Shown here: positions 1 through 5,739 of the stretch, piece by piece
Position numbering within the stretch: the stretch's first letter is position 1
Layout of the letters: each line of letters starts with the position of its first letter
Source: Oikopleura dioica
Lineage: Eukaryota > Animalia > Chordata
DNA: 5,739 nt
Direction: 5' to 3'
Assembly (NCBI GenBank): GCA_907165135.1
Contig: CAJRAX010000004.1
Span: 1-5,739 of the forward strand
Program-made: the position numbers and the translations under genes
Notes under the pieces: model-generated
Told to the model about the DNA's origin: nothing
Database searches by the model: none
Seen by the model: the letters and a program-made list of their open reading frames with translations, nothing else

Positions 1-749
1 GAAAATTTGAAAAGAAGAGCGAAATTTTAAAAAAGCACGAAAAAGAGTCTAAATTAAGATCCGGAAGGAAGAATCTTTTTTCTTTGATTCTCTGGTTTTG
101 ACGCGTCTGATTCTAGCAGAATCAGTAGTTTTCTCTTTATAAAGAGCTCTGGGTGAATTCTCTTTTTGTTGGAAAAATAAGCTGATTTAAACAATTTTCG
201 CAAGAGCCACAACTTATCCTAGCTCATTTTGGTGCTCACCAATCAGCGCTCTATTTCGTGAGTCAACTTTACAACTTTCCCACGGTCTCAATTTGAATTT
301 TATGCTATTTTGATTCAAATCTTTAGATTCTTGAACCATTTCCTGATTCTTTTCAAGCTCTGATAGTTTAGACATCGAGAATTCAAAAACACGCTCATTT
401 TAAGGATTACGAAAATCTAATAAACTTAAATATAGTGAGATTTTTAAAGAGGCTTATCTCGAGTGAAGGAAATCTCACAAAGTGATCAGGGGATATTCAA
501 AATGTTAGTGAGTGTCAGAAGAGATGACATTTTGAGAAACTTCATTAGAGATCTCGATATCATAGCGGGTTCGTCAGCAATTTTACCTTCTAGAAATCAA
601 ACTGTTCGTCAGGTGAATTTTCGGGCGACTTAACATCATATGACAAACTTGATATAAGTGCAAATAGAAACGCCAAACGCGCAAGGAAGCTCTGAAGAAA
701 TTGTCAGATAACCAAGTTTCTAAAAGCCTTTTCTCATTCAAAACCAGTC

Positions 750-811
750 AATGCCCCGAGTCAAACAGTAAAAATTCGACAACAAATTGATAAAACTATT
801 TTGATGGACTC
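750..811 (+). repeat. Inverted repeat, internal (left) copy
   Basis: AATGCCCCGAGTCAAACAGTAAAAATTCGACAACAAATTGATAAAACTATTTTGATGGACTC. Its core (759-811) matches the reverse complement of 2218-2269 at 52 of 53 positions (one C indel). The match extends to 750/2278 across three mismatches. Confidence 0.97.
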
Positions 812-1448
812 CATCGCGCTTTGGGATTCCGAGTTACGCTGAGAGTCTAGCCTCCTGGCCACGATTCTTATTGGTCCCTTTTCTATTTTCAGGGCTTCAG
901 TAGGTGGAATGGTTTCGCATTCGTCCAACTTGACGCTTGGGTCCTCAGTCGTGCCCGCTGAGTCTGCTTTTAAAACTTCGTAGGCTCTCCATTGGCTTAA
1001 ATAGATATAGCTTTGATTCGAGGTTACCAGAAATCACGAGAGTCAGTTTCTACTTCTACAATTTAAATCTGCGATGATAGAGAAGTATGAAACCAAACTC
1101 GTTGCTCTATAAACGACAAGTAATTCTTTTCCTGATAGCACCGTAAAAATGATCTGGAAGGCGAGAGAAACTCTGCGAAGTAGATCTCGCTTTTGAAGAG
1201 TCTACCGTCGAACATCGCCTGTAATTCGAAGAAAGCTCATTTGCATCGAGGACATAAGTCTGACAGTCTCGTGGCAATCTTTTGCTCCGCCATTGCAGTG
1301 CGAAATTCTTCTCCAATTTATCTGACTCATTAAGAGCAGAAGTGTTTCTTTAAGTGGATCAAAGCCTATCCTAAATTTGGAAGAGTGTTCAGGGTAGCCC
1401 GTTCTAAAATTCTGAGAGAAGAATCCTTTCCTGGAATTTCCTCATTGA

Positions 1449-2006
1449 GGTTTGGAGTCTTCTTTGGGAATTCTCGGTGGGCGTATTGGATCCGGTCAAA
1501 GCCACTCCCCATTTGAGGCCGAAATTCCAAACTGCCTTGACGAAGAGCCTCCTCGATCATGTCTAAATGAGAGGGTCAGCAAGTCTAGAGCTTCGAGAAG
1601 AAACAGGAATTCCGAATTTCTAAGAAGAGTTTCTCTGAATCTAAAGCCTGAAGCTGGTGGCTCGCTCAGCGCCCGCTGCGCACTTACTAAGTAGAAATCC
1701 CAGAAGCCTTCGAGGCATGTGCCTGAACTGGGATAATTTTATAGTCCGTAGACTTTTAGAAGTGAAATAAGCAGTAGCATCGGTGATAGTCTACCTAGAA
1801 GTCTTTTGAATTCAGCTTGGAATCTTGTGGTAATACTTCTGCTGAAAAAGAGCTCTATTTAAAATTCCTCATTTTAGAGTTTTAGCTGCAAAAGCTAGAA
1901 ACACTTTCAAATGAACCTGCGTAATTCCAGAGGCACCCGCTCAAAAACAGAGTACTCTCAGGCACCTTTGACACCTTCCACTGCCTCCTAGAGAATCCCT
2001 GTCTGA
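1449..2006 (+). CDS. Alternative candidate: 185-codon S/R/P-rich frame open only if TAA/TAG = Gln; extends the 1452-1694 ORF
   Basis: This frame has no TGA between 1449 and 2003, contains seven TAA/TAG codons and ends at TGA 2004-2006. It has no ATG near its start and overlaps the minus-strand candidates. A TGA-free run of this length is within chance expectation. Confidence 0.12.
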
Positions 2007-2167
2007 ATTTTAAAAACTTCCTGCCGCATTCTATTTCTAAAGGCTGCTAATCCCTTGTCTAAATTCATCATGTATCCCTGCCTTACTTCGTTAAAATTCT
2101 CATTTTTGTTTCCAAAAATAATACCAATCTAGCAACCTTCAAAAATCAAGCATTCTGCTTCATTCAT
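1850..2167 (-). CDS. Candidate coding segment, only if TAA/TAG and TGA are read as sense codons; unknown product
   Basis: From ATG at 2165-2167 the frame reads MNEAECLIFEGC*IGIIFGNKNENFNEVRQGYMMNLDKGLAAFRNRMRQEVFKIQTGIL*EAVEGVKGA(TGA)EYSVFERVPLELRRFI(TGA)KCF*LLQLKL*NEEF*IELF (* = TAA/TAG). Composition looks protein-like and the strand is purine-rich. No homology search was run. Confidence 0.25.
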
Positions 2168-2217
2168 TATTCGTTTGTTCTTGTTTTGGAAGTAAAACAA
2201 AGCTTTGCATTATTTCT

Positions 2218-2278
2218 GAGTCCATCAAAATAGTTTTATCAATTTGTTGTCAATTTTTACTGTTTGACTTAAGGCATT
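2218..2278 (-). repeat. Inverted repeat, terminal (right) copy abutting the TTAAAA repeats
   Basis: GAGTCCATCAAAATAGTTTTATCAATTTGTTGTCAATTTTTACTGTTTGACTTAAGGCATT is the reverse complement of 750-811 with one indel and three substitutions. Its last TT is also the start of the first TTAAAA unit. Confidence 0.97.
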
Positions 2279-2324
2279 AAAATTAAAATTAAAATTAAAA
2301 AAACTTTTTAAAACTTAAAATTAA
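2277..2324 (+). repeat. Short proximal (TTAAAA)4 block (2277-2300) followed by degenerate units
   Basis: 2277-2300 is four exact TTAAAA units. 2301-2324 reads AAACTTTTTAAAACTTAAAATTAA (degenerate units), followed by non-repeat sequence to 2359. Confidence 0.9.
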
Positions 2325-2359
2325 CAATTCTCCAGAAACTTCCCCTTGCGCAATTGGCA

Positions 2360-5300
2360 TTAAAATTAAAATTAAAATTAAAATTAAAATTAAAATTAAA
2401 ATTAAAATTAAAATTAAAATTAAAATTAAAATTAAAATTAAAATTAAAATTAAAATTAAAATTAAAATTAAAATTAAAATTTAAAATTAAAATTAAAATT
2501 AAAATTAAAATTAAAATTAAAATTAAAATTAAAATTAAAATTAAAAATTAAAATTAAAATTAAAATTAAAATTAAAATTAAAATTAAAATTAAAAATTAA
2601 AATTAAAATTAAAATTAAAATTAAAATTAAAATTAAAATTAAAATTAAAATTAAAATTAAAATTAAAATTAAAATTAAAATTAAAATTAAAATTAAAATT
2701 AAAATTAAAATTAAAATTAAAATTAAAATTAAAATTAAAATTAAAATTAAAATTAAAATTAAAATTAAAATTAAAATTAAAATTAAAATTAAAATTAAAA
2801 TTAAAATTAAAATTAAAATTAAAATTAAAATTAAAATTAAAATTAAAATTAAAATTAAAATTAAAATTAAAATTAAAATTAAAATTAAAATTAAAATTAA
2901 AATTAAAATTAAAATTAAAATTAAAATTAAAATTAAAATTAAAATTAAAATTAAAATTAAAATTAAAATTAAAATTAAAATTAAAATTAAAATTAAAATT
3001 AAAATTAAAATTAAAATTAAAATTAAAATTAAAATTAAAATTAAAATTAAAATTAAAATTAAAATTAAAATTAAAATTAAAATTAAAATTAAAATTAAAA
3101 TTAAAATTAAAATTAAAATTAAAATTAAAATTAAAATTAAAATTAAAATTAAAATTAAAATTAAAATTAAAATTAAAATTAAAATTAAAATTAAAATTAA
3201 AATTAAAATTAAAATTAAAATTAAAATTAAAATTAAAATTAAAATTAAAATTAAAATTAAAATTAAAATTAAAATTAAAATTAAAAATTAAAATTAAAAT
3301 TAAAATTAAAATTAAAATTAAAATTAAAATTAAAATTAAAATTAAAATTAAAATTAAAATTAAAATTAAAATTAAAATTAAAATTAAAATTAAAATTAAA
3401 ATTAAAATTAAAATTAAAATTAAAATTAAAATTAAAATTAAAATTAAAATTAAAATTAAAATTAAAATTAAAATTAAAATTAAAATTAAAATTAAAATTA
3501 AAATTAAAATTAAAATTAAAATTAAAATTAAAATTAAAATTAAAATTAAAATTAAAATTAAAATTAAAATTAAAATTAAAAATTAAAATTAAAATTAAAA
3601 TTAAAATTAAAATTAAAATTAAAATTAAAATTAAAATTAAAATTAAAATTAAAATTAAAATTAAAATTAAAATTAAAATTAAAATTAAAATTAAAATTAA
3701 AATTAAAATTAAAATTAAAATTAAAATTAAAATTAAAATTAAAATTAAAATTAAAATTAAAATTAAAATTAAAATTAAAAATTAAAATTAAAATTAAAAT
3801 TAAAATTAAAATTAAAATTAAAATTAAAATTAAAATTAAAATTAAAATTAAAATTAAAATTAAAATTAAAATTAAAATTAAAATTAAAATTAAAATTAAA
3901 ATTAAAATTAAAATTAAAATTAAAATTAAAATTAAAATTAAAATTAAAATTAAAATTAAAATTAAAATTAAAATTAAAATTAAAATTAAAATTAAAATTA
4001 AAATTAAAATTAAAATTAAAATTAAAATTAAAATTAAAATTAAAATTAAAATTAAAATTAAAATTAAAATTAAAATTAAAATTAAAATTAAAATTAAAAT
4101 TAAAATTAAAATTAAAATTAAAATTAAAATTAAAATTAAAATTAAAATTAAAATTAAAATTAAAATTAAAATTAAAATTAAAATTAAAATTAAAATTAAA
4201 ATTAAAATTAAAATTAAAATTAAAATTAAAATTAAAATTAAAATTAAAATTAAAATTAAAATTAAAATTAAAATTAAAATTAAAATTAAAATTAAAATTA
4301 AAATTAAAATTAAAATTAAAATTAAAATTAAAATTAAAATTAAAATTAAAATTAAAATTAAAATTAAAATTAAAATTAAAATTAAAATTAAAATTAAAAT
4401 TAAAATTAAAATTAAAATTAAAATTAAAATTAAAATTAAAATTAAAATTAAAATTAAAATTAAAATTAAAATTAAAATTAAAATTAAAATTAAAATTAAA
4501 ATTAAAATTAAAATTAAAATTAAAATTAAAATTAAAATTAAAATTAAAATTAAAATTAAAATTAAAATTAAAATTAAAATTAAAATTAAAATTAAAATTA
4601 AAATTAAAATTAAAATTAAAATTAAAATTAAAATTAAAATTAAAATTAAAATTAAAATTAAAATTAAAATTAAAATTAAAATTAAAATTAAAATTAAAAT
4701 TAAAATTAAAATTAAAATTAAAATTAAAATTAAAATTAAAATTAAAATTAAAATTAAAATTAAAATTAAAATTAAAATTAAAATTAAAATTAAAATTAAA
4801 ATTAAAATTAAAATTAAAATTAAAATTAAAATTAAAATTAAAATTAAAATTAAAATTAAAATTAAAATTAAAATTAAAATTAAAATTAAAATTAAAATTA
4901 AAATTAAAATTAAAATTAAAATTAAAATTAAAATTAAAATTAAAATTAAAATTAAAATTAAAATTAAAATTAAAATTAAAATTAAAATTAAAATTAAAAT
5001 TAAAATTAAAATTAAAATTAAAATTAAAATTAAAATTAAAATTAAAATTAAAATTAAAATTAAAATTAAAATTAAAATTAAAATTAAAATTAAAATTAAA
5101 ATTAAAATTAAAATTAAAATTAAAATTAAAATTAAAATTAAAATTAAAATTAAAATTAAAATTAAAATTAAAATTAAAATTAAAATTAAAATTAAAATTA
5201 AAATTAAAATTAAAAATTAAAATTAAAATTAAAATTAAAATTAAAATTAAAATTAAAATTAAAATTAAAATTAAAATTAAAATTAAAATTAAAATTAAAA

Positions 5301-5739
5301 TTAAAATTAAAATTAAAATTAAAATTAAAATTAAAATTAAAATTAAAATTAAAATTAAAATTAAAATTAAAATTAAAATTAAAATTAAAATTAAAATTAA
5401 AATTAAAATTAAAATTAAAATTAAAATTAAAATTAAAATTAAAATTAAAATTAAAATTAAAATTAAAATTAAAATTAAAATTAAAAATTAAAATTAAAAT
5501 TAAAATTAAAATTAAAATTAAAATTAAAATTAAAATTAAAATTAAAATTAAAATTAAAATTAAAATTAAAATTAAAATTAAAATTAAAATTAAAATTAAA
5601 ATTAAAATTAAAATTAAAATTAAAATTAAAATTAAAATTAAAATTAAAATTAAAATTAAAATTAAAATTAAAATTAAAATTAAAATTAAAATTAAAATTA
5701 AAATTAAAATTAAAATTAAAATTAAAAAATTAAAATTAA
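2360..5739 (+). repeat. (TTAAAA)n hexamer tandem array, ~562 units, running to the window end
   Basis: Read directly: 3380 bp of TTAAAA units with no G or C. Nine units are longer than six bases: an extra T at ~2480, an extra A at ~2541, 2590, 3281, 3576, 3775, 5210 and 5481, and two extra A at ~5722. Longest perfect run is 3782-5209 (238 units). Confidence 0.99.
2360..5739 (+). other. Probable telomere: G-strand (TTAGGG)n basecalled as (TTAAAA)n
   Basis: Terminal, multi-kb, single-orientation hexamer array whose unit equals TTAGGG with GGG->AAA. The TTAGGG->TTAAAA miscall is an established nanopore basecaller error. Telomere identity is inferred, not visible in the sequence. Confidence 0.75.

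Follow-up and report, generated by a model that had tools for sequence, protein, structure and literature searches.

An inverted repeat abutting a probably miscalled telomere on the unplaced scaffold chrUn_13 of Oikopleura dioica

The window, i.e. the whole stretch of DNA that was analysed (5,739 nt, positions 1-5739), comprises the whole of chrUn_13, an unplaced scaffold in the OKI2018_I69 assembly of Oikopleura dioica. The GC content of the window was determined to be 15.891%; chrUn_13 is listed in Table S1 of the assembly paper with 0.005739 Mbp, one contig, no genes and a GC content of 15.89%, and also with 81.41% repeats and a nanopore depth of 295x (PMC8008620). The scaffold starts with an AT-rich, non-coding left flank (1-668), in which no telomere-type repeat was present in the true or the miscalled form. 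The flank is followed by the left arm of an inverted repeat (669-811, + strand), a unique spacer of 1406 nt (812-2217), and the inner (2218-2269) and outer (2270-2361) parts of the right arm, both on the + strand. The rest of the scaffold (2359-5739, + strand) is a telomere array written as (TTAAAA)n, which has the G-strand orientation and reaches the 3' end of the contig. The base composition of the left arm is normal, and this arm is probably the copy with the correct calls. The spacer was non-coding by every test run and was not palindromic, as only short and weak inverted repeats without matching inverted halves were detected in its interior.

The searches for genes were carried out on 20 ORF pieces, including pieces of the spacer and the left flank, and no Pfam family was detected above noise. 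The matches to RepB_primase_C (E 0.14) and DUF733 (E 0.021) were both below the cut-off and were rejected. Homologous proteins were found for neither of the two ORFs searched. Among representative proteins, the single hit of the ORF 764-1033 (minus strand), to P0001, a bacterial-type repeat protein of 3236 aa (E 2e-16), was rejected as a summed chance match in which the same weak stretch of 13/34 appeared 16 times. The ORFs crossing 2217/2218 were only 22-23 aa long, too short to have been called for the protein databases. A ciliate or another alternative genetic code was also rejected, as the six-frame translation under ten codes gave no convincing gene and the organism is O. dioica. On the minus strand of 593-1738, one frame contained 7 TGA but only one TAA/TAG in 382 codons, the other frames having 7-16. 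Its stop-free run of 203 codons was matched by 15 of 500 block shuffles, which is marginal, and no homology was found for a TGA-as-sense gene. No Rfam family reached its gathering score in the window and no tRNA was detected; the hit of TeloSII_ncR30 at 7-177 (minus strand) had 23 bits with the gathering score of 86 (E 0.015) and was taken as chance. Two exact 32-34-mers had no match in the JGI metagenomes.

With TRF, 562 copies of a 6-nt unit at 99% were found in 2359-5739. The 3381 nt of the array contain 0 G, 0 C and 553 perfect TTAAAA units. Eight units have an extra A (seven TTAAAAA and one TTAAAAAA) and a surplus T occurs at 2480, all at irregular spacing, and these extra letters look like slips of basecalling or polishing, not like variant telomere units. 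The telomere repeat of O. dioica is TTAGGG, which was used for the telomere annotation of OKI2018_I69 and was found on other scaffolds of the assembly (PMC8008620). Unamplified LSK109 libraries were sequenced on R9.4 flow cells, and the reads were called with Guppy 2.3.5 (flip-flop) (PMC8008620). Nanopore basecallers often write the G-strand (TTAGGG)n as (TTAAAA)n, the current profiles of the two being near-identical (Tan et al. 2022, Genome Biol 23:180, PMC9414165); the miscall tests of that study covered other Guppy versions than 2.3.5. On chrUn_13, a TTAGGG species, R9.4/Guppy-type reads and a G strand without G running 5' to 3' towards the end were found together. Because the array lies in the G-strand orientation at the contig end, in R9.4 Guppy data of a TTAGGG species, the 3.4-kb array is most likely a real (TTAGGG)n telomere miscalled by the nanopore basecaller; the miscall and the repeat of the species are both taken from the literature. 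The error product, the G-strand specificity and the R9.4 and Guppy family were all the same as in the published miscall. In contrast to the latter, where reads of human samples were described (PMC9414165), the error is here fixed in a published tunicate scaffold.

Some small scaffolds of OKI2018_I69 carry telomeric repeats and may be subtelomeres which were not joined to the chromosomes (PMC8008620). In accordance with this, chrUn_13 would be a spare copy of one real O. dioica chromosome end, which would have been assembled separately from the chromosomes because (TTAAAA)n was called in its G-strand telomere reads in place of (TTAGGG)n.

The inverted repeat was aligned locally, globally and with MAFFT, and all three alignments gave a full repeat of 669-811 and 2218-2361 with arms of about 143 nt, over twice the length reported in the sequence-only reading. 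The inverted copies described there at 750-811 and 2218-2278 were recovered as two pairs, 771-811/2218-2258 (41 nt, 95%) and 750-776/2252-2278 (27 nt, 89%), offset by a 1-nt indel. The identity of the inner core, given there as 52/53, was reproduced by alignment, and the sole difference between 2218-2269 and the reverse complement of 760-811 is a lost G at 2252. The match had been considered too long for chance, which agrees with the best inverted local score of 106 in 1-2360 versus a maximum of 46 in 30 shuffles. The right copy, however, does not end at the first TTAAAA unit as had been proposed: the homology runs about 83 bases further, with 669-749 pairing with 2279-2361, and the segment bounded by the repeat is 669-2361 (about 1.69 kb) instead of 750-2278.

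The outer part of the right arm is G-depleted and shifted towards TTAAAA, and it is colinear with the reverse complement of 669-759. Aligned alone, the outer part scored 30; the maximum among 766 other windows was 22, and the score of 30 was reached by 0 of 1000 shuffles. It is also exactly colinear with the inner part of the repeat. The reverse complement of 729-749 is the counterpart of the four TTAAAA units (2276-2300), and that of 669-728 is the counterpart of the seemingly "unique" 58-nt stretch behind them (2301-2358); both thus belong to the right arm. The stretch holding the four units is about 27 nt long and its left-arm counterpart about 23 nt, and these similar lengths point to corrupted homology rather than to an inserted telomere tract. 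The four units had been taken for telomere units which touch the 61-nt copy and share TT with it; TTAAAA is, however, a known nanopore miscall of TTAGGG, and the units at 2276-2300 are corrupted arm sequence. The right arm stops where the long array sets in (2359-2361). Nothing aligned past the arms with MAFFT: the four inner flanking columns were all mismatched, and the sequences outside the arms are the telomere on the right and unrelated sequence on the left.

The bases kept in the right arm were counted from its MAFFT alignment with the reverse complement of the left arm. In 2218-2269, 7/8 of G and 45/45 of the other bases were kept (identity 52/53). The corresponding values were 2/12, 16/22 and 18/36 for 2270-2305, and 4/12, 32/44 and 36/58 for 2306-2361. 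Over the whole of 2270-2361, only 6/24 of G were kept versus 48/66 of the other bases (Fisher p = 7e-5). G-to-A accounted for 17 of the 41 differing columns, and G was gained in only one column. The differences between the arms look technical, having the same G-to-A direction as the telomere miscall and growing towards the array, and the arms may in truth be identical. A genuine strand bias of mutation is possible, though not needed for these differences.

The G loss seems to continue for about 90 nt in the unique sequence beside the array. This is not described in PMC9414165, where the miscall concerns the telomere repeats themselves. Two technical causes may be considered. Firstly, the basecaller may drift before the array begins. 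Secondly, the Racon consensus may be a hybrid, as miscalled telomere reads from all the chromosome ends would stack on the array and spill over its border; OKI2018_I69 was assembled with Canu 1.8, three rounds of Racon and Pilon, followed by HaploMerger2 and 3D-DNA (PMC8008620). The Illumina reads would have left the outer arm unrepaired because the clean left arm is a better fit for them. The left arm contains two related hexamers, AACGCC (669-674) and AATGCC (750-755), 81 nt apart, and both became GGCATT in the right arm after G-to-A, which creates an illusion of identical GGCATT-TTAAAA junctions at 2273 and 2356.

The G bias also bears on whether TTAAAA could be genuine. A genuine (TTAAAA)n sequence without G, be it a satellite or a new type of telomere repeat, for which the G-poor outer right arm would be a real diverged border, would agree with the high regularity of the array, its perfect units and the lack of G and C. 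Such a repeat is nevertheless hardly credible in a species with the TTAGGG telomere, which is present on other scaffolds of the same assembly (PMC8008620). Moreover, TTAAAA is the exact documented product of the G-strand error in R9.4 Guppy data (PMC9414165), the array is oriented as a G strand at the contig end, and the adjoining unique sequence has the same G-to-A bias in comparison with its own inverted copy. We hold with high confidence that chrUn_13 represents a real chromosome end with a miscalled telomere, with 143-nt arms running up to the telomere and with technical differences between the arms.

From this structure we infer the presence of the repeat in the DNA of the animal and its mode of origin. 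If the inverted copy were technical, the DNA of the animal would carry a single 143-nt tract, and the second arm would be a product of one or several chimeric nanopore reads or of Canu, Racon or HaploMerger2. The quality of the scaffold is poor in several respects (the 5.7-kb piece was left unplaced, its array is obviously miscalled and the boundary zone is corrupted), and the possible identity of the arms would also suit a technical copy. However, a template-complement nanopore chimera is usually a full palindrome without a spacer, and here 1406 nt of non-palindromic sequence separate the arms. The overlap of 143 nt is also too short for an assembler or a haplotype merger to join on. Canu trims and splits reads at unsupported junctions and sets contigs of a single read aside, so that the scaffold is more likely to be backed by several reads; a single-read chimera, as had been considered in the sequence-only reading, is less likely given that the contig was built by Canu and then polished with Racon and Pilon. 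As the nanopore library was unamplified (PMC8008620), inverted chimeras of the multiple-displacement type are not expected in the long reads. The depth of 295x probably consists mostly of miscalled telomere reads of all the chromosome ends stacked on the array, judging from the array forming 59% of the scaffold, and is hence hardly informative on the 2217/2218 junction. Altogether, we regard a technical origin of the inverted copy as unlikely, albeit a possibility of some weight.

According to the sequence-only reading, the segment could be an element whose end receives telomere addition. In such a telomere-bearing or telomere-seeding element, the end of the arm would be a specific site of telomere addition, either by programmed fragmentation at a conserved end sequence, in resemblance to the TBE elements of Oxytricha, or by a transposase cut at the end of the terminal repeat and subsequent telomere addition. 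The sole point in favour of this model is the coincidence of the right-arm end with the telomere start. Such a coincidence calls for no special mechanism, as it arises by construction in any repeat that a telomere truncates. No telomere repeats, the miscall forms CTTCTT and CCCTGG included, were found at the left arm by direct reading or TRF, and none in the true or miscalled form lie in 1-668. The apparent internal units are, as described above, corrupted arm sequence. The absence of a visible target-site duplication and of a transposase, which had already been remarked upon, held, as likewise none was seen, and no other domain was detected. Position 750, which had been proposed as an alternative site of telomere addition, is not a boundary of the arm. 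We know of no fragmentation of the chromosomes in O. dioica. The segment resembles the Oxytricha elements TBE1-3 in having inverted terminal repeats and telomere-type sequence at one element end; in TBE1-3, however, telomere repeats lie within the terminal repeat at either end, the target duplication is 3 bp long and a transposase gene is encoded, and all three features are absent here. The model of a telomere-bearing element thus found no support at the left arm or in the coding content, and we consider it very improbable, whereas a plain repeat-bounded, non-coding element is possible. An endonuclease-deficient Penelope-like telomeric retroelement (Athena/Terminon) was rejected as well, as no reverse transcriptase domain (Pfam) and no hammerhead (Rfam, E up to 1) was detected, and the tract comparable with the interstitial telomere tract of Athena/Terminon is corrupted arm sequence.

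The geometry of the locus is also compatible with fold-back healing of a break, another proposal of the sequence-only reading, although the copied tract would run from 811 to 669 and not from 811 to 750. In this case, a break would have occurred near 2217-2220, and the resected 3' end would have folded at about 811, primed itself, copied about 143 nt to 669 and dissociated, after which telomerase would have extended the terminal GTT. Such an event would be in keeping with a short inverted copy, a spacer of 1.4 kb and a telomere that follows the copy directly. The arms are possibly identical once the G loss is discounted, as expected of a recent copy, and the reverse complement of 669-671, with its terminal GTT, gives a 2-3 nt overlap with the TTAGGG register. 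Apart from the geometry, however, positive evidence was not found, and any microhomology at the fold-back point would be counted within the arms. The array and the four units constitute about 59-60% of the scaffold versus the 81.41% that was masked (PMC8008620), so about 1.2 kb of the rest matched the repeat library of the authors. This masking is a weak hint of a multi-copy element and as such speaks against a unique event.

Healed fold-back inversions are known from inv-dup-del chromosomes and yeast gross chromosomal rearrangements, and they likewise combine an inverted copy, a kilobase-scale spacer and a telomere directly after it. The arms of the known cases are, however, usually of kilobase to megabase length, compared with only about 143 nt here, and neither a lost distal segment nor a recent event is evident on chrUn_13. 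A real and recent repeat, formed at a broken O. dioica end which primed itself and was capped by telomerase, appears rather unlikely. If true, it would provide a sequence-level snapshot of the repair of ends in O. dioica and of the origin of new chromosome ends. To our knowledge, O. dioica lacks classical end joining. Its chromosomes are extremely scrambled (PMC11067885).

As a whole, the scaffold is best read as carrying an ordinary, real inverted repeat of the subtelomere, with the telomere beginning within or at the end of the right arm, and we favour this reading with modest confidence. Two origins of the repeat are the most likely: its arms would be the long paired TIRs of a non-autonomous DNA transposon, or else subtelomeric DNA would have been duplicated locally in inverted orientation. 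With either origin, the end of the chromosome would lie within the right arm or at its border, owing to a terminal truncation or to the copy extending no further, and it would have been capped by telomerase. Terminal inverted repeats as in a TIR DNA transposon or a MITE are present (669-811 versus 2218-2361). The left flank ends in ...CAAATAGA, and the array forms the flank on the right; no target-site duplication was seen between them, and none is expected if the end is truncated. The lack of a Pfam-detectable transposase on the 20 ORF pieces is compatible with a non-autonomous member, which needs none. The inverted arms of at least 143 nt, the short non-coding interior and the position in repeat-rich subtelomeric DNA resemble MULE- or Foldback-like elements and large MITEs, from which the segment differs by having no target-site duplication and no known terminal motif. 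It also differs from long-TIR non-autonomous transposons in that one end is the telomere, and the true end of the element may consequently be missing. If the reads confirm the repeat, chrUn_13 would be one more O. dioica end with a telomere abutting a repeat, which would be of modest interest for the rebuilding of ends in a genome known to be heavily rearranged.

The structure left after the correction is of an ordinary kind, and the exciting readings rest on an artefact. chrUn_13 is a published reference scaffold with its telomere in the wrong letters and with a corrupted boundary zone. Such a telomere is missed by TTAGGG searches, and it prompts false ideas of G-free telomeres and telomere-bearing elements; flagging it in the reference is the chief practical use of the present result. 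On the + strand of 1901-2217, i.e. before the right arm, G was scarce in comparison with C (15, 11 and 10 G versus 34, 25 and 19 C per 100 nt), which could be a natural skew or the same G loss deeper in the contig.
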